Of a DNA stretch of 64,000 nucleotides, positions 27,450-53,228 are shown in pieces. Every line of letters starts with the position of its first letter. The stretch's first letter is position 1. The translations under genes and the position numbers were made by a program. The notes under the pieces were generated by a model, which saw only the letters and a program-made list of their open reading frames with translations, ran no database searches and was not told the DNA's origin. Location: the sequence record ON190024.1; one strand, 5' to 3'.

Positions 27450-28145
27450 ATGAAGAAGCTCGTACTTGTAGCTGCTGCGGCTGTAGCTCTTGTTGGATGT
27501 GGTGATTTGCCACGTCTGGAAACTAAGACAGACAAGAAATTCACCACGGTTAATGCCGTTGTGAACAAAAAAGAGCGTGAAATGATTAACTACTGGATGG
27601 CAGATGCTGACGGTAGTAACTATCTTTACAACAAGCTTTGGACTGCACTTGCTACTCGTAACAAATACGGTTCTAATGCTGTGCGTCGTTCAGATGATGA
27701 AGTCCCGTTCTGTGATGTTATTGTAGCCCTTGCTAAATCTGAAGAAGGTATTCGAAGCACGTACGAGCGCACATTTAACAATCAGTGGCGAACTCAATAC
27801 GGCATTAGTCTTAATCAGCAATGTGGCTATACTCCACCAGAAACACTCGAAGAGCAAGCAGAGCGCATTGAGCAACTTGAAATGCAAGCTGATTTGAAAA
27901 AGCGTGAGCAACAAGCACAGAGTATTGAAACTCTTGATGACGTTGCCGACGCGACGACTGAGCTACTTGATCCGCATGAGTACGACTATCTAATCGAATC
28001 GGCACGCGAGTGTAATCGAGCCAAAACCAAATTGCTTGAACTAACGCAAGCAGGCAAACCTCTGACACAAGCTGACGGCTCAGATGCACGTAAGCTAATT
28101 ATCGAATGCAAAATGCATAAACTTGAAGTTGAATTGAATAAGTGA
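27450..28145 (+). CDS. lipoprotein, paralogue of 39992..40711
   Basis: signal peptide with LVGC lipobox; shared EVPFCDVI, CNRAK, KLEVELNK. Confidence 0.8.
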   Translation: MKKLVLVAAAAVALVGCGDLPRLETKTDKKFTTVNAVVNKKEREMINYWMADADGSNYLYNKLWTALATRNKYGSNAVRRSDDEVPFCDVIVALAKSEEGIRSTYERTFNNQWRTQYGISLNQQCGYTPPETLEEQAERIEQLEMQADLKKREQQAQSIETLDDVADATTELLDPHEYDYLIESARECNRAKTKLLELTQAGKPLTQADGSDARKLIIECKMHKLEVELNK

Positions 28146-28935: not shown

Positions 28936-28964
28936 TTTCCGATGCGGGTTGTTACGACATCCCG

Positions 28965-28972
28965 CATAAATA
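28965..28972 (+). promoter_or_regulatory. T4-type late promoter
   Basis: CATAAATA, same as the element upstream of the tail-fibre gene (62447-62454, minus strand). Confidence 0.7.
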
Positions 28973-29004
28973 GTTCTATATGGACTAACAAGGAAATTAC
29001 GACA

Positions 29005-29535
29005 ATGCCAACTCCTACAACAGGTGCGATTTCAATCGGTACCGTTCGTGATTATTTCAGTAGAACCGGCGCTGCTTCATTGTCTCAGTACTACAGAGGC
29101 GGCGGTATTGTTCCTGATATTACTGAAAATGCTCACGTACCAACTTCAGGCGCGATTAGCTTGAATGACTTGCGCGGTGTATATCGCTTGTCAACGTATA
29201 CGACATCATTTACGACAACATACAACACCACTGTATCAACATCGAATACGACTTCGCGTAGTACATCAAGAAGTACAACTAGAAGTACTGCATACAGTAC
29301 AACTCGCTCGACTGCGTATACTACTAGTTGGACAACTAGCCGAACTACGTCGGTGGCGAAAGGATCGTATACGACCACATACGCAACTTCACGTGCTACA
29401 ACTCGTTCAACTGCGTATAACACGACACGTTCAACTGCTTATACGTCTACATGGACGACATCGTGGACAACGACGTACAACACAACAAGATCAACATCAA
29501 ACACAACTTCTCGAAGCACGCAAGTTGCAGTTTAA
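29005..29535 (+). CDS. Ser/Thr tetrad-repeat protein, putative virion fibre/adhesin
   Basis: AAGGA RBS; N-domain with two GAIS motifs; 26 X-[STNA]-T-[STA]-type tetrads. Confidence 0.8.
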   Translation: MPTPTTGAISIGTVRDYFSRTGAASLSQYYRGGGIVPDITENAHVPTSGAISLNDLRGVYRLSTYTTSFTTTYNTTVSTSNTTSRSTSRSTTRSTAYSTTRSTAYTTSWTTSRTTSVAKGSYTTTYATSRATTRSTAYNTTRSTAYTSTWTTSWTTTYNTTRSTSNTTSRSTQVAV

Positions 29536-29547
29536 CGAGGTTAAATT

Positions 29548-29766
29548 ATGAGCTACAATGAAGAACACGAGAATCGAATCAACGAGCTTGAGTCAAAGGT
29601 TGCAAGGCTTGAGTCGATAATTGAAAATCTGGTTGAGTCTATGACATCAAACAGCGAAGCTATTATCGAACACATTGCATCACTTGAGACCGAGAGAGAT
29701 TCGATTCTTGCATCATATGATGACAAACTTAATGAGATCGTGAACAAATATGAACCCAAGCAATAG
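29548..29766 (+). CDS. small acidic coiled-coil protein
   Basis: GAGG RBS, heptad pattern. Confidence 0.75.
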   Translation: MSYNEEHENRINELESKVARLESIIENLVESMTSNSEAIIEHIASLETERDSILASYDDKLNEIVNKYEPKQ

Positions 29767-30604
29767 AGAAATGACTGGGTTCAATAACATATCTCGCATT
29801 GGTAAGTTGAAATTACAATCCGATGCAGACAACGTCCGTGCCATGTGTATGGACGTTGTTCGTTTATTGAACTCCAAAAATATACCATCCAACTTCGACA
29901 TCAATCACAATGACGGTGGTAACATCGGCGTGCATGAGTGGGTGTCACAAATCCGCTTCATTCACTTGAAATACATGAACGTTAATTTTCAAACGAAGAT
30001 TTTCAAGCATGCCTATCACAACACTGAAAACGTCGTTGACTATTTTGACACGTTCAAACATTCTGATAAATATCATCTTTCGGCGAAGCCTCGATTCCTA
30101 GAATATGAAAACGTCGTATTTCTATGTGGATCGAATGTGCTTGAATTGGCAATTGACTTTGACAAGATTGATGCGTTAGTCGAACAATATCCTGATTTGG
30201 TGATTAAACCTCACCCGATTACGACGTTGTATTACATCAATATGCTTAAATCTAGATATGGTTCAAAGCGAATTCTATCCCAAAAGATCAGTGGTGTTGA
30301 TGTGCTTAAAGCTGCTAAACGTGTTTGGTTGCCTTCAACGTCTGAGTTCTGGTTTAGTGCCTTGAACTACGACAAAGAAATCGGGTTTATCTCTAAAGAT
30401 GGTTTCTGTGGAACGTACACGTCAATCATCAACGCAGTATGGGAATTGCATGAAGAAACCGGTGATCCATTGAAAGATATTGTGAATAAAATTATCTCGT
30501 CACCTTACTCAGGTCTGTATGGTAGTATGGCAGACTTTGAAGAGCATCACGAGAAATACTGTAATGTGATTCTAGAACTAGGGGGTAATTTCGATAATGT
30601 ATGA
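29750..30604 (+). CDS. GT-B glycosyltransferase-like protein (capsule biosynthesis KpsC/KpsS-like)
   Basis: LVIKPHP, then VWLPSTSEFWFSALNYDK resembling the S..G.EAL motif region; alternative start 29771. Confidence 0.6.
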   Translation: MNPSNREMTGFNNISRIGKLKLQSDADNVRAMCMDVVRLLNSKNIPSNFDINHNDGGNIGVHEWVSQIRFIHLKYMNVNFQTKIFKHAYHNTENVVDYFDTFKHSDKYHLSAKPRFLEYENVVFLCGSNVLELAIDFDKIDALVEQYPDLVIKPHPITTLYYINMLKSRYGSKRILSQKISGVDVLKAAKRVWLPSTSEFWFSALNYDKEIGFISKDGFCGTYTSIINAVWELHEETGDPLKDIVNKIISSPYSGLYGSMADFEEHHEKYCNVILELGGNFDNV

Positions 30605-31229
30605 TTATGTAATTCACACTTCGATTAGTGACAAAAGTCAGCTAAACCAACTAGTGATGTTTGTCGGGTCTTTCATCGAGACGCACAAAAAAGGTCGCGT
30701 GGTCTGCGTGACTGATCTTGAACTTGATTTCACGATGCCTCGACTGTCATTTGAGAAAAAACTACCCGAAGAGTACGTTTTCATTTCAGTTGACAATCTA
30801 TTTTTACAAAAAACATACGGCGTTGTTAGCTACATTGACAGTGGTACTTGGCGATGTACTTGGCAAAAGAATGATCATGATGATTTCGTCATTAAAAAGC
30901 ATGGCGAAAGAAGCGGGTTGATTCACCCTGATATTGCAATTGCAAATTACAATGTTTCGAGACATGGCGATCTCGACATGTATTACAACGCGCTTCGTTA
31001 CATTGAGAGCGCAATCACGATCAACTGCAAAGACTTTGCCCCTGCTGCTGAGAATAAAATCAACAGCTTTTACACGCTTGTATTTCCATGGGAGATTTAT
31101 TTTCACGTTATGATCACTTACCAAGAGTATATTGATTCTGAATACGTTGAGCGAGTTCGCGCTAACTGTCATAAGTTCGCACACTCGGTTTATTACAGAA
31201 AATCAGGGTTGTTACGTGATGGGTTATGA
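30597..31229 (+). CDS. hypothetical protein, possibly degenerate GT-A glycosyltransferase
   Basis: N-terminal beta-alpha-beta pattern ending VVCVTD, similar to GT8-type starts; weak. Confidence 0.4.
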   Translation: MYDYVIHTSISDKSQLNQLVMFVGSFIETHKKGRVVCVTDLELDFTMPRLSFEKKLPEEYVFISVDNLFLQKTYGVVSYIDSGTWRCTWQKNDHDDFVIKKHGERSGLIHPDIAIANYNVSRHGDLDMYYNALRYIESAITINCKDFAPAAENKINSFYTLVFPWEIYFHVMITYQEYIDSEYVERVRANCHKFAHSVYYRKSGLLRDGL

Positions 31230-31902
31230 TGAGATAATTTTAGTATCTGGTCTTGATAGTTTAGTTCTATATGAATTTCTTGAACGAAAGCCACACCCTG
31301 TTTACTTTAAATGGGGTTTTGCTATCGACGACATTGAAATGGCTGCTTTGCCTGAAGAAACAACTATCATAGAAATGCCAGAGATTTTGCATTTGAAACA
31401 TGATCCGTATGAGTTCAAGACACCAAGAAATCCCGATTTAATTGGTCGGAATACGTTGATGTTTAACTCAGTTTTCCATGCATTCAGACCAAACGTAATT
31501 TATCGCGGGATGTTGAAAGGTGATGATTTCTATTACGACGCATCGCCTACGCATTCAGATGAAATCGCAGCTATGTGGTCGAAAATGCTGAATAAAGAGT
31601 GTCGAATTGAACAACCGTTTAAAGACAAAACGAAACGTGACATAATGCAAATGGCGGTCGAATACGGTATTGATGCGAATTCATTACAGCATTGTTACAA
31701 TCGAGAACACAACTGCGGTCGATGTAGCAAGTGTGTGGATGCACATGTTAATTCTATGTACACCGACAACCCAGACATCATGTGGCTGAAACGAATAGTC
31801 AATGATTCGGGTATGTCATCAATGGCTAATCACATGTTTGGTGTTGATACAGTTGACAGAATAAAGGAATTTCTAGATGAATTTGATCGAACAGACTGCT
31901 GA
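31219..31902 (+). CDS. QueC-like PP-loop ATPase
   Basis: SGLDS, GRN, YYD, PFKDKTKRDI, CY...CGRCSKC Zn motif; 227 aa; PP-loop lacks one Gly. Confidence 0.75.
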   Translation: MGYDEIILVSGLDSLVLYEFLERKPHPVYFKWGFAIDDIEMAALPEETTIIEMPEILHLKHDPYEFKTPRNPDLIGRNTLMFNSVFHAFRPNVIYRGMLKGDDFYYDASPTHSDEIAAMWSKMLNKECRIEQPFKDKTKRDIMQMAVEYGIDANSLQHCYNREHNCGRCSKCVDAHVNSMYTDNPDIMWLKRIVNDSGMSSMANHMFGVDTVDRIKEFLDEFDRTDC

Positions 31903-32770
31903 TAAATTCGAGCATAGTTACCGAGAAGACGTTCAAGGCGTACAGTGGTATTTCGGTAGTCGAACGCATGATTTTTATCTGTATGGAATAGACTCTCTTA
32001 TTGATAAAGTCAAAGACTGTGATTTTATTGAAATCAAGCATGTTCAAGAGGGTACGCTGGTTAAACGAGGCGAAGCTGCGGTCACGGTTACGATTACAGA
32101 TCATAGTCGTATCGCATATGGGAACATGATTGAAACATTGTTGTACAATGAGTTGTGGTATTCGAGCACGGTCGGTACGATTTTACATCGTTGTCTTGAT
32201 GTGTTGCATGAAAACGGCTATGACGCTCGTTCAGCATACCCTCAAATCGGACGGGCGAGTTCAACGCCAGAACAGTCAGCTAAAGCAAGGGATGTGTTCG
32301 CACGTATATTTTATCAATCGTCGAATGAGAAAATACCCGTTGCGATGCACAGTGATATTTTAATCAACGGTGAGGAATATTGCATGGAACATTATAACGG
32401 CATTATGATTGATACTTTCGATAAGCAAGCTTGCATTGACTTGATCAACAAGAAAGACTTTCGAGGGACTGTGATGGTTGACTCTCAGCCAATAATTGAA
32501 ACAATTGAGAAAGTTCTAGCTGAAACAAAATGCTTTGTTGCACAAGCTGAAAGTGTTACACTCGATGAGTGGATAAAGATAGTGCGACATTTTAAAGGCA
32601 ATAAGCGAATTTTCTACGGGATTGGTAGCTTTGCATTTAGCAATATATCACGAGACACATTTGGTTTGATTTACAAAGTGTGTGCAGTTAAGAAAAACGA
32701 CAACTGGATCGGAGTTTCAAAGATGACGACAGGTAAACAAACATCGGCTGGTTATAAGGTTATAGGTTAG
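31877..32770 (+). CDS. compact NAMPT/NAPRT-like type II phosphoribosyltransferase
   Basis: aligns by eye to NAMPT at 35934 (EGT, ET....LWY..TV, IDTFD, DS, YGIG, RDT, KM...K...AG). Confidence 0.75.
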   Translation: MNLIEQTADKFEHSYREDVQGVQWYFGSRTHDFYLYGIDSLIDKVKDCDFIEIKHVQEGTLVKRGEAAVTVTITDHSRIAYGNMIETLLYNELWYSSTVGTILHRCLDVLHENGYDARSAYPQIGRASSTPEQSAKARDVFARIFYQSSNEKIPVAMHSDILINGEEYCMEHYNGIMIDTFDKQACIDLINKKDFRGTVMVDSQPIIETIEKVLAETKCFVAQAESVTLDEWIKIVRHFKGNKRIFYGIGSFAFSNISRDTFGLIYKVCAVKKNDNWIGVSKMTTGKQTSAGYKVIG

Positions 32771-32772
32771 TT

Positions 32773-33762
32773 ATGAATTATTGTATAGCGCCGTTTACAT
32801 CGCCGTCTATTACACCAGACGGTTTTAAAATTTGCAGCATGCCAGGTCAGAAAGTATACCCTGATATTTCATTCTGGAATAGTGATGAAGTGATCAAGAT
32901 TCGCGAACAGATTATCGCTGGTGAAATTCCTGAATCGTGCAAGGCATGTCGTAGTATGCGTGACGGGTTGATTGTGTCAAAAGAAAAACCAACTGATACT
33001 CATGTTGACTTGAATTTCAAAGCTCTTTACATTGCGCGGTCGAACAAGTGTGAATATGCTTGTGAAATGTGCAGTTCATCAATCTCACATAGCTATGACA
33101 AGAAATACAATGACGGTAAGTTGGGGATTATTGAGAATGACTTTGATGTTATTCCGTATCTGCACGAAACACAAGCCGTTGCTATTTCGGGCGGGAACCC
33201 TGTCATTGACAAAAAGGTTGCAGAGATTCTTGAGAATCTAGACCCTGACGTGGTAGAACGTTTCATTATTACTTCAAATGGGACAGTCTTTCCAGACAGA
33301 TTCTTGAATGCAATTAAGAGATTGAAATGTGACGCGACTTTGATATTCTCTATGGACGGACCGAAAGAGTTTAATGAAGTGGTTCGATCTGGTGCGAAGC
33401 AAGAGAGAATCTATCGCACCATTAATCGAGTTCTTGACGAGATTGAAGATTACCCAAACTTGCATGTGGCAATTGAGTATACTTTCACGAATAAGTCAAT
33501 TCATCACTACGTTGATTTGTATGATGAAATGCTCTTCGAGATCAACCCGAAGCATTTGAAAAACAACTCAGTTAAAGTGATTGCGAATATGTGTACATAC
33601 CCGCATCACCTTAGCGTTACAACTGTTCCCAAAACCGTCATTGATGACATATTGTTCAATCAGTTGCCATATTTGAGACAGCAACCCAGCCCATTGTCAA
33701 ATCAATTCAAACTTGGCTATGATAAGTTTTTGACTCAGTATCACAACAGCGTGATTATGTGA
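32773..33762 (+). CDS. radical SAM protein with N-terminal twitch domain
   Basis: C.APF...C...WNS...IRE...CKAC then CEYACEMC, GGNP, SMDG. Confidence 0.85.
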   Translation: MNYCIAPFTSPSITPDGFKICSMPGQKVYPDISFWNSDEVIKIREQIIAGEIPESCKACRSMRDGLIVSKEKPTDTHVDLNFKALYIARSNKCEYACEMCSSSISHSYDKKYNDGKLGIIENDFDVIPYLHETQAVAISGGNPVIDKKVAEILENLDPDVVERFIITSNGTVFPDRFLNAIKRLKCDATLIFSMDGPKEFNEVVRSGAKQERIYRTINRVLDEIEDYPNLHVAIEYTFTNKSIHHYVDLYDEMLFEINPKHLKNNSVKVIANMCTYPHHLSVTTVPKTVIDDILFNQLPYLRQQPSPLSNQFKLGYDKFLTQYHNSVIM

Positions 33763-34879
33763 TCAGATCATACGCTTTGATATGTGAGTAAAACTCTGGA
33801 CACGCAGACGATAAATTAGTTTTCGTCTTCGTGTCTATTCTTTTGTTAAGAACAAAGAATTCAGGGTTGAATTTACAAACACTGTGTTCCAGAGTAAGAC
33901 ATTCAGCAACGTGCTTAAATGGTCTAGCCAAATCCTCACGCCCATCTTTTAAATACGCTTCTTCTTTCACTTTGAATCTTGATAATAGCTGGTCTCGAAA
34001 TGCAACTGGAATGTTGTAAATTGAGTATGGATTATCAGGCTCACCGACGACATGCACAGACAAACGTACACGTTTACCATCATAAAGCGAATCAAAATCT
34101 GAAACCAATGTTTCAAGATGTTCAAGAGTCACGTTTGACACGGTCGCAGTGATAACTACATCAAAGTGTTGCTTGATGACTTCAATGTTTGATTTGACTT
34201 TTTTGATGTCTGCAAACAATCGAATATAATCTTGGTATTCTCGTAGACCGTCGATTGATACGAACACCGTTGATGCATTAGCTTCTTTAAGCGATTTGAT
34301 GAGATCTGAGCCATCGGCTAACACTAGTGATGAGCCATTCGTGAAAATATTCACTGCGGCTTTAATGTCGCCTACGTTGCGAAGAACTTCAGGAGCATTT
34401 GACGAGCGGGTAATTTCACCGCCTAGAATTGTCAATGACGAAAGTCCTTTGCTGATTGTGTTGATTGTCGTACTCAAATCATTGAATCGAGTACTTGAAT
34501 CTTCTTCATTGAACAATCTAGCTTTCAAGTCTGATAATTTGCTGTAGCAGTAACGACAAGCTTGGTTACATTCATTACTAGGGAATACTTGTAGCCAGCG
34601 AACTGAATCAGCGGGCATAATAGGTGAAACTTCAGAATCGTGTTCTGTTAGACGCTGTGGGTCATTATCAGTGATGCACATTTGACATGCCTTTGACAGC
34701 TTGCTCATGTCGTGGTTTAGCATTGCTTCACGATAAGCGACAAGCTTTTCATCATTCCAAGCGTCTGCTAGTGTTTTTTCATCAGTAAACCATTCATAAT
34801 CAGCCGAACAGCAAAACGTAATTTGATTGTTTGCTCGTGTGATGAACTGCTTGAACGGCATATAACATAGTGGTTTCAT
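33755..34879 (-). CDS. radical SAM protein with N-terminal twitch domain
   Basis: CYMPF...CC...WN...YRE...CQMC then CNQACRYC, GGE, SIDG. Confidence 0.85.
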   Translation of the reverse strand: MKPLCYMPFKQFITRANNQITFCCSADYEWFTDEKTLADAWNDEKLVAYREAMLNHDMSKLSKACQMCITDNDPQRLTEHDSEVSPIMPADSVRWLQVFPSNECNQACRYCYSKLSDLKARLFNEEDSSTRFNDLSTTINTISKGLSSLTILGGEITRSSNAPEVLRNVGDIKAAVNIFTNGSSLVLADGSDLIKSLKEANASTVFVSIDGLREYQDYIRLFADIKKVKSNIEVIKQHFDVVITATVSNVTLEHLETLVSDFDSLYDGKRVRLSVHVVGEPDNPYSIYNIPVAFRDQLLSRFKVKEEAYLKDGREDLARPFKHVAECLTLEHSVCKFNPEFFVLNKRIDTKTKTNLSSACPEFYSHIKAYDLIT

Positions 34880-34889
34880 GTTTCTGTCC

Positions 34890-35462
34890 TTAGTTAAAAA
34901 TGCTACTTGTATATATAGCAGTCTTCAGAGCATTGAAATGATCGTCAACTCTATTCACGTGTATGCATTCAATGTCAAATTTTTCTTGGATTTCTCGGAT
35001 GTTGTCTAGCGAGTCGTCGATGAAGTATTTCACCTCATGCAGTTCACACAGCTTCTCAACATATTTTGCCTTCGAGTCGAAGTACTCAATCGAAATCACC
35101 TCACTTATCATCCCTGGGAATAACGCATTTAGATTATGCACGCGATTTGACCATGAAGTTCTACTCATGCTGAACTTGGTTAGTGCAATGATGTTATACC
35201 GGTCTGAGAGTTCGCGTAACGCATCGTAAGCGTCTTCATATGCGGGTATGTACTTTGCACACTCATGTTCATTGTATGCACCTATAAGCTTGCCTAGCTG
35301 CATGTCACTCACGTTAATAAATAAAGAGCGTGCATCGGTATCAGTATTTGAACCGTTGATATTCAAATTATCAAGCATGCCTAATTGCATCATGAAGAAT
35401 GGCAAGTTGGCTTTCCAGTTAAGCAAAACCCCGTCTACATCTATGATGATCGTCTTTTTCAT
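34890..35462 (-). CDS. HAD-family phosphatase (5'(3')-nucleotidase-like)
   Basis: IIIDVDGVL, FIDDS. Confidence 0.85.
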   Translation of the reverse strand: MKKTIIIDVDGVLLNWKANLPFFMMQLGMLDNLNINGSNTDTDARSLFINVSDMQLGKLIGAYNEHECAKYIPAYEDAYDALRELSDRYNIIALTKFSMSRTSWSNRVHNLNALFPGMISEVISIEYFDSKAKYVEKLCELHEVKYFIDDSLDNIREIQEKFDIECIHVNRVDDHFNALKTAIYTSSIFN

Positions 35463-39991: not shown

Positions 39992-40711
39992 ATGAAAAAA
40001 TTAATCGCAATCGTAGCACTAGCAGCATCAGTAGCAATGACTGGTTGTACTGACACCATCGACAATTCAGCAACTGATCAGCTAAAAGCAGCCATGCCAG
40101 TTCTTTCTCAAACTGAAAAAGATATGCTGAATGTATTCGCTGCTCCGAACTTCTTGAGCCGTTACGACAACATGTATGCAGAAGTGGTCAAAAATCGCGT
40201 ACACTTCGGTCAGAAGCCGATTCCACGAGCAGATACAGAAGTGCCGTTCTGTGATGTAATCGACGCTGTAATCGCAGCAGAGCGCGAAAACAATCTAACA
40301 GAACGTGATTACTCACTGAGCAATCAATGGAAGATGAAATACGGCATCACACTTCTTGAGCAATGTAATCAATCAGACCGTGCTCGTATTGAAATGCAGA
40401 TCGCTAAAGCAAAAGCCGATGCTGAAGCAGCTAAAGATCGAGTAATCATCGAAGAACAAGAATTCAGCAAGAAAGAAATCAAAGCTGAGAAAATCATCGA
40501 AGACACCGTTGTAATCAAAGATGATGTGCTACTATCACCTGAACTTGTTCGTGAACTACGTGGCTCAGTTAAAGACTGTAATCGCGCTAAAGTCAAGCTA
40601 ATGAGTGTAGTTGATGCCGGTGAGCAGCTAACTACAAAGCACTACGACGAAGTTAAAGGTCTAGTTCTACAGTGTGAAATGTTGAAACTAGAAGTCGAAC
40701 TCAACAAATAA
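39992..40711 (+). CDS. lipoprotein, paralogue of 27450..28145
   Basis: signal peptide with MTGC lipobox; shared motifs. Confidence 0.8.
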   Translation: MKKLIAIVALAASVAMTGCTDTIDNSATDQLKAAMPVLSQTEKDMLNVFAAPNFLSRYDNMYAEVVKNRVHFGQKPIPRADTEVPFCDVIDAVIAAERENNLTERDYSLSNQWKMKYGITLLEQCNQSDRARIEMQIAKAKADAEAAKDRVIIEEQEFSKKEIKAEKIIEDTVVIKDDVLLSPELVRELRGSVKDCNRAKVKLMSVVDAGEQLTTKHYDEVKGLVLQCEMLKLEVELNK

Positions 40712-41163: not shown

Positions 41164-42216
41164 TCATTTCACCATTTTGATTTGAATCTGATTGTCCATG
41201 TAAGCCATTTTCTTTTCAAATTCAACATCATATTCTGGTCGATGTTCGTATTCGACTGAAAGCATTTGCTTCAGACAACGGTACAATTCCGACTTGTAAT
41301 ACCCTTCTTTCATTCCCTTCATCTGTTCATATTGCTTTTTCATAGCAGCTTTGATTATCTTCGGGTCCATGAATTTGATTGACATTTCTCGCGGTGCTTT
41401 TACTGTGCCAAAGTCAACAAACACCTGAGCCTTTTCAGCTACTTGAATGAAGTCATAAATCGTGTCATAACTCATTCGACTTAGCGTGTGGTGCATACAA
41501 ACATGTTTGCTATGTTCTTTTAGCAACGGTACATTTGCAAGCATCAAGTCGTGGTCGATGTTCTGACGAATGTATTCGTTGCGCTCTTTTCCGCCGTCAC
41601 ATGAAATTGTAAACACTAGACGATGTTTGTACTTTTTACATATGGCTAGAATCTTCTTCGCAAGTGGCGTATGCAACACAGTACCATTTGTCAGAATGTA
41701 AACTTCCGCATTTGTTTCTTCCATGACTTCAGTCAGAACTTCGACTGTTCTCTTGTCCATGAACGGTTCGCCGCCGTATAGCACAACAGTTTCAACACCC
41801 TTCGGGATACTGAAATCGAGTTGTGTGTAATCGTAATGGTCGTCAATGTCATACAAGTCCATGTATGTTTTGCTATTCTTGCCATAGCACATTCGACACG
41901 CTAGGTTACATTTGTTTGACATCAATATTTGAATTGTTCTAGGATGCTCTTCGAGTGCTTCATATTCGAAGTACTTCTGATCAGACAATTCGCCATAACT
42001 CATACATTCTTTGCAGTATTCTGGTAAAGTGTCATACTCAAACATTTTGGCACGATGTTCATTGATGATGTCACTGTGCCACCAGTCTTCAACGTTCGGG
42101 AATGGTTCACTTAGCTGAGAACAGCAAATGTGATACCCATCAGGTTTTGCGTCACGTGTATTAAAGGGAGAGCCACAAAGTGGTCTCTTCCCGTCTTTAA
42201 ATCCGAATTTATCCAT
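41164..42216 (-). CDS. radical SAM protein with N-terminal twitch domain
   Basis: CGSPF...CC...WW...HR...CKEC then CNLACRMC, YGGEPF, TNG, SCDG. Confidence 0.88.
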   Translation of the reverse strand: MDKFGFKDGKRPLCGSPFNTRDAKPDGYHICCSQLSEPFPNVEDWWHSDIINEHRAKMFEYDTLPEYCKECMSYGELSDQKYFEYEALEEHPRTIQILMSNKCNLACRMCYGKNSKTYMDLYDIDDHYDYTQLDFSIPKGVETVVLYGGEPFMDKRTVEVLTEVMEETNAEVYILTNGTVLHTPLAKKILAICKKYKHRLVFTISCDGGKERNEYIRQNIDHDLMLANVPLLKEHSKHVCMHHTLSRMSYDTIYDFIQVAEKAQVFVDFGTVKAPREMSIKFMDPKIIKAAMKKQYEQMKGMKEGYYKSELYRCLKQMLSVEYEHRPEYDVEFEKKMAYMDNQIQIKMVK

Positions 42217-52346: not shown

Positions 52347-53228
52347 ATGCAGGTAAGATGGACAGAAATGTTTTACAGCATTCAAGGCGAAGGGAAATAC
52401 ACTGGTCAAGCTAGTTTATTCTTTCGCTTCTGGGGTTGTAACTTAGAATGTCACGGCTTCGGGCAAGAAGATCCGACGAATAAAGATACATGGGTATTAG
52501 ACTTCAAAGACTACGACCCGAAAGCGAACAACGTGACTTCAGTCGAAGATCTGCCTGTATGGACTCGTGGATGTGACTCTTCTTACACGTGGGCTAAAAA
52601 GTATGCTCATCTTGCTTCAAAGTCTGAAGTCGCAGATGTATGCGAAGCAATGCTTGAGAAACTGCCTAATCGAGTTTGGGGAGATATTCATTGGGTAATT
52701 ACAGGTGGTGAGCCGATGATGAATCAAGCTCAAATCATCGAAATGATGAATTACTTCATCAAAATTGACAATTATCCAAAACATGTCACGATTGAAACTA
52801 ATGGTACGCGAGAACTCAAGCCAGAATTTGCAGAGCGTTGGGCGCTAATTCAGTGGAATACGCATAGTAATGTTCACTTGAGTTTCAGCGTATCAGCTAA
52901 GTTGTACAACGTAACTGGCGAAGTGCATGAAAAAGCAATCAAGCCAAAAGTTGTCAACAAGTATGCACGCATCGGAGAAGTCTGGCTCAAGCCAGTCGTC
53001 GTAGACAAGGAAGCGTGTTGGGACGAGCTTGATGCTGTGATCGCACAGTTCAAAGCAGAACGCAACTTACACAACGTTCCAGTGTATATCATGCCATGTG
53101 GTGCTACTCAAGAAGAGCAAGAACAAGATGGTTATATGGCGTCAATCGCAGGGAAAGCATTGGCGCGTGGTTACAACGTTTCTGTACGAACTCACGTATG
53201 GATTTGGGGTAACGCGGTGGGCACGTAA
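52347..53228 (+). CDS. queE: 7-carboxy-7-deazaguanine synthase (radical SAM)
   Basis: EMFYSIQGEG, F.RFWGCNLEC..F ... CDS, ITGGEP, IETNGT. Confidence 0.9.
   Translation: MQVRWTEMFYSIQGEGKYTGQASLFFRFWGCNLECHGFGQEDPTNKDTWVLDFKDYDPKANNVTSVEDLPVWTRGCDSSYTWAKKYAHLASKSEVADVCEAMLEKLPNRVWGDIHWVITGGEPMMNQAQIIEMMNYFIKIDNYPKHVTIETNGTRELKPEFAERWALIQWNTHSNVHLSFSVSAKLYNVTGEVHEKAIKPKVVNKYARIGEVWLKPVVVDKEACWDELDAVIAQFKAERNLHNVPVYIMPCGATQEEQEQDGYMASIAGKALARGYNVSVRTHVWIWGNAVGT

Follow-up and report, generated by a model that had tools for sequence, protein, structure and literature searches.

Bases 1–64000 of Vibrio phage PVA8 (ON190024.1), a KVP40-type Schizotequatrovirus, were analysed as a single 64-kb stretch, hereafter the window, and the subject of this study is an open reading frame (ORF) within it at 31219–31902 (+), whose 227-aa product (P0001) we refer to as QueCL. 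From gene content and sequence comparison we conclude that the canonical QueC of this phage serves the DNA-modification pathway and that QueCL is a second, divergent QueC-family PP-loop protein with a zinc ribbon. Its gene adjoins that of a predicted miniaturised phosphoribosyltransferase (PRTase) of the NAMPT fold, PRTL (31877–32770, +; 297 aa). Our tentative reading, which we consider quite possible, is that QueCL may act as a ligase that activates 7-carboxy-7-deazaguanine (CDG) and works with the PRTase in a deazapurine route independent of DpdA.

The ORF was confirmed. The surrounding 7 kb match Vibrio phage PVA8 / PC-Liy1 at unchanged coordinates with 100% identity, and identity to KVP40 over this stretch is 98.6%. 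The KVP40 homologue, KVP40.0258 (99% identical), carries the RefSeq label 'QueC-like queuosine biosynthesis' and is given a GTG start one codon upstream of the start used here. The Pfam QueC model (PF06508) matched QueCL with 37 bits (cut-off 22), the match being confined to residues 76–173, and TIGR00364 gave 28.7 bits, far under its equivalog cut-off of 150.3. The PADLOC CBASS-QueC model matched end to end (48.7 bits; profile positions 9–182 of 190), and Cap9 was the sole sequence match in the PDB (E 1e-5). Identity to the canonical QueC of the same genome is 21% over 136 residues. Several database records annotate the QueCL homologue as queC, and those that name it '7-cyano-7-deazaguanine synthase' are probably mislabelled. 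A first-pass annotation of this DNA had described a non-canonical QueC-sized protein with a VSGLDS loop and an intact zinc-binding Cys site, lying among glycosylation and radical SAM genes, and had proposed a PRTase as its partner in one of two possible functions. Size, loop and Cys site can all be read in the 227-aa translation, and the remaining points are borne out by what follows: a clade of its own with canonical motifs lost and Cap9 as the closest relative by sequence and structure; a weakly GT52-like protein, the NAMPT-like PRTase and two N-twitch radical SAM proteins as neighbours; and a pairing with the PRTase that recurs across lineages.

Canonical motifs were checked by alignment to E. 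coli QueC, using the experimentally defined signature (PMC13329287). QueCL retains Arg99 (R77 in QueCL), Tyr131 (Y105), the Asp of YPDC (D107), Lys165 (K139), the zinc-binding Cys residues and Tyr189 (Y160), and lacks Gln37 and His39 of YxQxHxxE, the Val-Pro of VPxRN and Cys134 of YPDC. The segment at YxQxHxxE reads W-G-F-A-I-D-D-I-E, of which only the Gly and the last Glu are kept, with Trp at the position of E. coli Tyr35; Arg77 and Asn78 are present in the VPxRN region, and the Cys of YPDC is replaced by Ala. Within YxQxHxxE of the E. coli enzyme, only substitution of Tyr35 abolished activity, and Arg99 and Tyr131 were essential too (PMC13329287). The zinc site, C159-Y160-x5-C166-G-x-C169-x-x-C172, has a first spacer of six residues, compared with eight in the canonical C(x)8CxxCxxC.

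The PP-loop of QueCL is V9-S10-G11-L12-D13-S14, which relative to the canonical SGGxDS has either one Gly fewer or a register moved by one. All members of the subfamily have S-G-[LIF]-D-S at this place. Across six subfamily clusters, ranging down to 28% identity with QueCL, the invariant residues are S10, G11, D13, S14, L74, G76, R77, K139 and the four Cys, and positions 105 and 107 vary as Y/F and D/E. Since the loop residues are invariant across six such divergent clusters, the comparison indicates that the altered loop is a conserved trait and not decay.

A structural model of QueCL, built with AlphaFold2 (AF2) from 57 homologues (pLDDT 90.9), was compared with known structures using Foldseek and VIA-align. 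The highest score was obtained with Cap9 (9nto_B; Z 16.4, root-mean-square deviation 2.4 Å, 167 residues), followed by B. subtilis QueC (Z 14.1), Erwinia QueC (Z 13.8) and QatC (Z 12.7), the remaining PP-loop ATPases giving Z ≤11.7. In Cap9 the deazaguanine is contacted by L83 (through the backbone), R86, Y115 and D117, and S18, D22 and S23 form the pyrophosphate motif; an S18A/S23A mutant is dead, and SxGxDS is required (10.1101/2025.04.06.647259). In phmmer alignments the four base contacts correspond to L74, R77, Y105 and D107 of QueCL, and the pyrophosphate residues to V9/S10, D13 and S14.

HMMER was run exhaustively against 1.84 billion representatives and returned 68 hits, among which only seven clusters at 50% identity make up the S-G-x-D-S group. 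In a quick IQ-TREE run these form a single clade (SH-aLRT 95) nested in divergent phage QueC-like proteins; the canonical KVP40.0124 branches apart from it, and the position of E. coli QueC, near the base, is not resolved. The deepest clade member (P0016) already has the S-G-x-D-S loop and still has Y-G-Q. The nearest outgroups, which have a normal SGGxDS loop, adjoin FolE or a QueE-like gene on phage contigs, and for this reason the QueCL clade is most likely descended from a phage QueC. Pattern-based scans of IMG/VR and JGI metagenomes gave no further relatives, and a word-index protein search with QueCL found close kin only; as far as these searches reach, the clade is small and phage-only. 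No paper joining a QueC-like protein, a nicotinamide phosphoribosyltransferase and a phage was found in a search of the literature for the QueCL paralogue or its pairing with PRTL. PMC12028318 enters the QueCL homologue of phage 6E35.1a under 'Antidefense', as a CBASS-QueC hit.

PRTL scored 28.2 bits against the Pfam NAPRTase model (PF04095) and 64 bits on NF006629 (cut-off 405), and it has no match to the NAMPT_N domain (PF18127). Its AF2 model (pLDDT 91.0) superposed on human NAMPT with Z 25.5 and a root-mean-square deviation of 2.4 Å, 293 of the 297 residues being aligned, and as modelled PRTL is a complete but reduced NAMPT fold. Its best PDB sequence match is Namat (9w5x), whose A-T-E-H-S aligns with A-M-H-S of PRTL at the catalytic His, and the phosphate-binding GIGSF...RD is retained. 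The D-F-G-S-R-G segment of NadV reads P-Q-I-G-R-A in PRTL, with Gln at the position of NAMPT Phe193, and the position of Asp219, which in NAMPT reads the nicotinamide amide, is variable across the PRTL family. The N-termini also differ among members.

Four phage lineages have the two genes side by side, and every clade member with a readable context has the pair, often with overlapping reading frames. In a collection of 50,697 phage records QueCL and PRTL are present in the same 35. The Vibrio myophage lineages with the pair are KVP40, QD01, D484, D479, L040 and L043. PRTL lies immediately 3′ of QueCL in an SU10-like podophage contig (L012; 36% identity, E 4e-60) and in a circular 59.9-kb contig (L044), where the stop and start overlap. 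In L014 and L015 one radical SAM gene sits between them; in L014 (10659–11414) it encodes a 251-aa protein with a CxxxCxxC motif, next to a 404-aa PRTL. This 251-aa gene was considered as a QueE and rejected, as it is a radical SAM gene with RlmN/Cfr-like cluster-region hits only. In three independent metagenome contigs (L040:10001–11677, and also L041 and L042) a QueCL domain is fused to an N-twitch radical SAM domain in one 558-aa ORF (P0004), with PRTL one gene further on, and the fusion ties a radical SAM enzyme to the QueCL–PRTL pair. In the window, the start of QueCL overlaps the preceding gene (30597–31229) by 11 nt, and its final 26 nt are shared with the PRTL ORF, whose Shine-Dalgarno sequence AAAGGAA lies within QueCL. 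These overlaps and the internal Shine-Dalgarno sequence suggest that a string of genes for a 284-aa protein, a 210-aa protein, QueCL, PRTL and a radical SAM protein is translationally coupled.

Comparisons beyond the window drew on the KVP40, D484 and D479 records and on hits in PVA8. A canonical QueC (PF06508, 183 bits) is encoded at 73.7 kb in KVP40, and the genes clustered with it are FolE, QueD-like and QueF-like genes, a GATase and one for a 459-aa protein. The names given to the KVP40 genes by PMC8056088, which follows Hutinet 2019, are QueD (0120), FolE (0121), DpdA2 (0122), QueF (0123), QueC (0124) and QueE (0284). The DpdA2 of PVA8 lies at 218010–219386 and is 99.8% identical to that of KVP40, and the canonical folE/queD/dpdA2/queF/queC cluster is ∼60 kb from QueCL in the same genome. 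Since a FolE-QueD-QueE-QueC-QueF-DpdA2 route is already encoded, the known transglycosylase route is, by gene content, complete in this genome, and QueCL is an extra paralogue. The first-pass annotation had noted queE about 20 kb away, at 52347, and had recognised no folE, queD or dpdA in the window. Both observations stand: the product of 52347–53228 (+) is 99% identical to KVP40.0284, labelled 'QueE-like', and tblastn with KVP40 FolE, QueD, DpdA2, QueF and GATase gave no homologue in the window. Its implication that folE, queD, dpdA and a canonical queC are missing from the phage does not hold, given the cluster outside the window in PVA8 and KVP40. Among the observations that it had named as refuting its reading, a dpdA elsewhere in the genome was found, and a grouping of QueCL with canonical phage QueC was not. 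The QueE-like radical SAM protein, the presumed CDG source, reaches 48.7 bits with its best QueE NCBIfam model, under the cut-off; at 20 kb its gene is the que gene closest to QueCL, which has no linkage to queD, queE or dpdA.

The 48 Vibrio phage records that contain DpdA2 include at least 13 Schizotequatroviruses without a QueCL-PRTL pair, among them nt-1, CZ01, VH7D, ValKK3, phi-Grn1, phi-ST2 and Va3, as well as R10Z, R11Z, XZ1, PVA23, K566 and K567. The reverse case is the Schizotequatrovirus-like phage D479 (OZ195776.1). As judged by tblastn over its whole genome, FolE, the QueD-like gene and QueE are intact, scattered at about 53, 60 and 189 kb, and QueCL, PRTL, both glycosyltransferase-like genes, the first of the N-twitch radical SAM genes, the HAD-like gene and NadV are present, with no canonical QueC, DpdA2, QueF or GATase. 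The absence of DpdA2 was judged with the KVP40 protein as query, as the TGT Pfam model misses DpdA2 even in KVP40. From these distributions we conclude that the QueCL–PRTL pair is distributed independently of DpdA2. D479 thus keeps the CDG-making enzymes and QueCL–PRTL, QueCL being its only QueC-family gene, and has nothing to make or insert preQ0.

In the scheme we tentatively favour, QueCL would bind CDG supplied by the phage FolE, QueD and QueE or by the host, activate the carboxylate with ATP and transfer it to an amine, either ammonia or a larger one, so that the product would be an amide and not preQ0. PRTL would make an N-glycosidic bond at N9, using phosphoribosyl pyrophosphate or a related pyrophosphoryl donor, and the outcome would be a 7-deazaguanine ribonucleotide-type compound formed without DpdA; the scheme sets no order between the amide-forming and N9-ribosylating steps. 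Tailoring of the compound in Schizotequatroviruses would fall to the radical SAM, glycosyltransferase-like and HAD proteins encoded nearby. In CDG and its amide, 7-amido-7-deazaguanine (ADG), the carboxyl or amide group stands in a 1,3 relation to the ring nitrogen to be ribosylated, as it does in nicotinate and nicotinamide. By our own reasoning, this shared geometry makes the recruitment of a NAMPT fold chemically plausible. Both half-reactions have precedents: TubE is a CDG-specific PRTase from the tubercidin gene cluster, which has no QueC (PMC6112128), and RoyL-type QueC homologues join CDG to amino acids (10.64898/2026.04.15.718813). The pairing with PRTL and the gene content of D479 lead us to favour a nucleotide route, while the tail-fibre synteny described below keeps protein modification alive. 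That the two proteins form a self-contained phage module, in which a CDG ligase derived from QueC and a PRTase derived from NAMPT build 7-deazaguanine nucleotides or nucleotide-like conjugates without a transglycosylase, we regard as doubtful. Such a module would match the TubE/ToyH step of actinomycetes by convergence, and might account for the entry of deazapurines into the nucleotide pools, virion decorations or signalling molecules of phages without DpdA.

Several points weigh against the CDG ligase–PRTase proposal. The assignment of CDG as the substrate of QueCL rests on four contact residues that are common to all QueC-family enzymes, and as the PP-loop deviates from the SxGxDS needed by Cap9, use of ATP is not assured. 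FolE, QueD and QueE were not found in the parts covered of L012, L014 and L046, nor in the ∼30 kb covered of L044 (59.9 kb), so that in L012, L014 and L044 CDG would have to come from the host. It is also possible that the gene set of D479 is to be explained otherwise, for example as feeding a host QueC. Finally, a pyridine substrate for PRTL is a live alternative, since the family to which PRTL belongs is pyridine-specific, its nearest solved relative, Namat, is NAD-making, and NadV is 3 kb off.

Extended to both proteins, pyridine chemistry would have PRTL make a nicotinate-type mononucleotide and QueCL amidate its carboxylate (compare NadE, NMN synthetase and LarE), giving a third NAD+ module beside NadV/NatV. 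The complete fold of NAMPT and the catalytic His found in PRTL fit such a module, as does LarE, a member of the same Pfam family that works on a nicotinate mononucleotide derivative (PMC13329287), and two-gene NAD-restoring modules are cited, in PMC12028318, as moving among phages as accessory genes. However, QueCL has a QueC-type zinc ribbon and the deazaguanine contacts of Cap9 and not the features of LarE or NadE, and PRTL has Gln at the Phe193 position and a variable residue in place of Asp219. NAD salvage also offers no role for the radical SAM, glycosyltransferase-like and HAD partners, and the retention of FolE, QueD and QueE in D479 speaks against it. We consider this explanation unlikely.

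Protein deazaguanylation we regard as equally improbable. Here QueCL would ligate CDG to an amine of a phage protein, such as a tail-fibre-type protein or an adhesin, and the free N9 would then be a site for PRTL to modify or to bind. Of the solved structures, Cap9 is nearest to QueCL in both sequence and fold, the alignment with QatC runs on as far as residue 217, within the additional C-terminal helices, and Twitch/SPASM radical SAM enzymes frequently act on peptides. Gene order points the same way: the pair directly follows a tail-fibre gene in L012 and L044, precedes the gene for an internal virion protein in L044 and follows two S74 tail-fibre genes in L014, and the KVP40-type pair lies two genes after that for a small Ser/Thr-rich protein with a docking-like motif (28942–29535, +), a possible acceptor. 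Chance placement of accessory genes beside tail-fibre genes is common, however, and no conserved acceptor was found: the PRTL N-termini are variable, and the likeness of a 266-aa L014 protein to the KVP40 Ser/Thr-rich protein, considered as a possible homology, is not significant (E 0.086). Nor does a T4-type late promoter, TATAAATA, occur in the stretch from 26 to 38 kb of the window. The virion proteome of 6E35.1a includes NadV (VP6E351A_0328), and FolE, Acb1 and NARP2 proteins are reported there too; in the retrieved passage of that list (PMC12028318) the gene tags of QueCL, PRTL and the Ser/Thr-rich protein do not appear.

QueCL might instead make preQ0 just as a regular QueC does, perhaps as a back-up, to supply the DpdA2 pathway or host queuosine. 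It does score above the Pfam QueC gathering threshold, it is annotated queC in several records, and D479 has no other QueC-family gene to accompany its FolE, QueD and QueE. Against this stand the TIGR00364 score, the loss of Gln37, His39 and Cys134, the changed PP-loop, the replacement of Tyr35 by Trp and the separate clade; moreover, QueCL is absent from at least 13 DpdA2-positive phages, present without DpdA2 in D479 and always accompanied by PRTL, and we find this explanation very unlikely. Most unlikely of all is a non-catalytic binder that hands CDG or another base to PRTL or keeps it from host Cap9 or QatC defence, as might be supposed from the departure from SxGxDS and from the CBASS QueC call of DefenseFinder-type models, with the 'Antidefense' entry in PMC12028318, since the invariance of S10, G11, D13 and S14 points to a working phosphate loop and the phage makes CDG itself.

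If the proposed CDG ligase–PRTase route is correct, it would add a phage-side case to the known repurposing of the QueC scaffold in anti-phage defence (Cap9, QatC) and natural products (RoyL), here in partnership with a PRTase whose fold had not been connected with deazapurines before. Hutinet et al., in 2019, reportedly left the deazapurine chemistry of phages lacking DpdA as an open question. The pair would be a candidate for such DpdA-independent chemistry, and two conserved, unstudied KVP40 genes would gain a role.

In Schizotequatroviruses, QueCL–PRTL is embedded in a variable island, in which the number of N-twitch radical SAM genes is one or two. The overlapping string of genes begins at 29750–30604 (+) with the gene for the 284-aa protein, which has a weak GT52 / capsule-synthesis lead (Pfam GT52 at 19.8 bits, under the cut-off, and an atlas lead to Capsule_synth). 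It is found at ≥80% coverage in 35 Vibrio phage records and is present in D479, L040 and L043. A hairpin with a 14-bp stem lies at 29828–29860 (+), within the 5′ end of this ORF; the KVP40 RefSeq start is downstream of the hairpin, and the longer N-terminus is conserved in homologues. The 210-aa protein that follows (30597–31229, +; phrog_30897, function unknown) has a weak GT-A (GT8-like) lead, from atlas structural matches at TM 0.45–0.5 with a low-confidence model, and its gene adjoins QueCL in D479, L040 and L043.

Downstream of PRTL lies a first N-twitch radical SAM gene (32773–33762, +; NF033640 118.6 bits, cut-off 170; PF04055 37.8 bits), found at ≥80% coverage in 35 phage records, a list that equals that of the 284-aa protein in count, the names not being matched one by one. 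This is the radical SAM protein that is joined to QueCL in P0004. Its gene is followed by a convergent paralogue (33755–34879, −; NF033640 127.9 bits; PF04055 45.4 bits), and a third N-twitch radical SAM paralogue, 28–30% identical to this pair, is encoded at 41164–42216 (−). A HAD-like protein (T4 30.2-like; 34890–35462, −; phrog_420) has a weak Pfam Hydrolase match; its gene adjoins PRTL in D479 and is nearby in L040 and L043. In some lineages the island also holds a weakly 2-oxoglutarate-Fe(II)-oxygenase-like insert and a nucleotidyltransferase–kinase fusion, or a heptosyltransferase-like gene.

The Ser/Thr-rich protein (47% Ser/Thr) carries the motif SGAISLNDLRG, and in D479, L040 and L043 the genes of its homologues precede the island. 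Both this protein and the product of L040:7165–8268 have an N-terminal motif of the SG-x-IS-x-N-DLRG type, then Ser/Thr-rich repeats. The 266-aa protein of L014:9204–10004, likewise just upstream of the QueCL/PRTL island, has a Gly-rich tail instead. Elsewhere in the window, 27450–28145 (+) and 39992–40711 (+) encode paralogous proteins of ∼235 aa (32% identity, E 8e-32), the first with a lipoprotein-like signal ending in Cys. In the retrieved part of the 6E35.1a virion list, the 26-kDa VP6E351A_0309 appears homologous to the 27450–28145 product, by the D484 gene-number offset. A separate observation concerns L046:15365–21032, on a circular 59.9-kb SU10-like contig (ctg12061_17x_c) that has Rep3 and ParE, together with a 4618-aa ORF in which PBECR1, helicase and LPD39 domains are combined; with these genes the contig looks like a phage-plasmid.

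Among known systems, Cap9 of type IV CBASS (9nto) shares with QueCL the Rossmann-like core, the zinc ribbon and the base-contact residues. It differs in that QueCL has S-G-x-D-S instead of SxGxDS, the two Ser, one Gly and the Asp being invariant with the spacing one residue shorter or the register shifted; in that QueCL has ∼50 additional C-terminal helical residues and is phage-encoded and PRTase-paired; and in that the neighbourhood of QueCL is without CD-NTase, Cap10 (TGT-like) or Cap11, the TGT Pfam model giving no match in KVP40. Canonical QueC (3bl5, 2pg3) has the same fold (Z about 14), and the zinc Cys and Tyr, the Arg of VPxRN, the Tyr and Asp of YPDC and Lys165 recur in QueCL; in contrast, QueCL is only 21% identical, has lost the Gln/His and the YPDC Cys, has an altered loop, belongs to a separate clade and has no que linkage. 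RoyL-type synthetases and QatC use amines other than ammonia as acceptors for activated CDG, the chemistry proposed for QueCL, and RoyL is likened here by its described chemistry and not by sequence. QatC, from QatABCD, is a protein of ∼400 aa with N- and C-terminal extensions, whereas QueCL has 227 aa and is without QatC-specific motifs or QatA, QatB and QatD neighbours.

On the PRTase side, TubE (acting on CDG in the tubercidin pathway) and ToyH (acting on preQ0 in the toyocamycin pathway) phosphoribosylate a 7-deazaguanine base, which is the role proposed for PRTL, and the tubercidin cluster resembles D479 in having FolE, QueD and QueE without QueC. TubE and ToyH are, however, type I PRTases (PF00156), whereas PRTL has the type II NAMPT fold, so that any common function would be a case of convergence. 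With NAMPT/NadV and Namat (NARP1), PRTL shares the full NAMPT fold, the catalytic His and the phosphate-binding motifs; it differs from NAMPT/NadV in its length (297 compared with about 490 aa), in the changed Phe193 and Asp219 positions and in always being coupled to a QueC-like gene.

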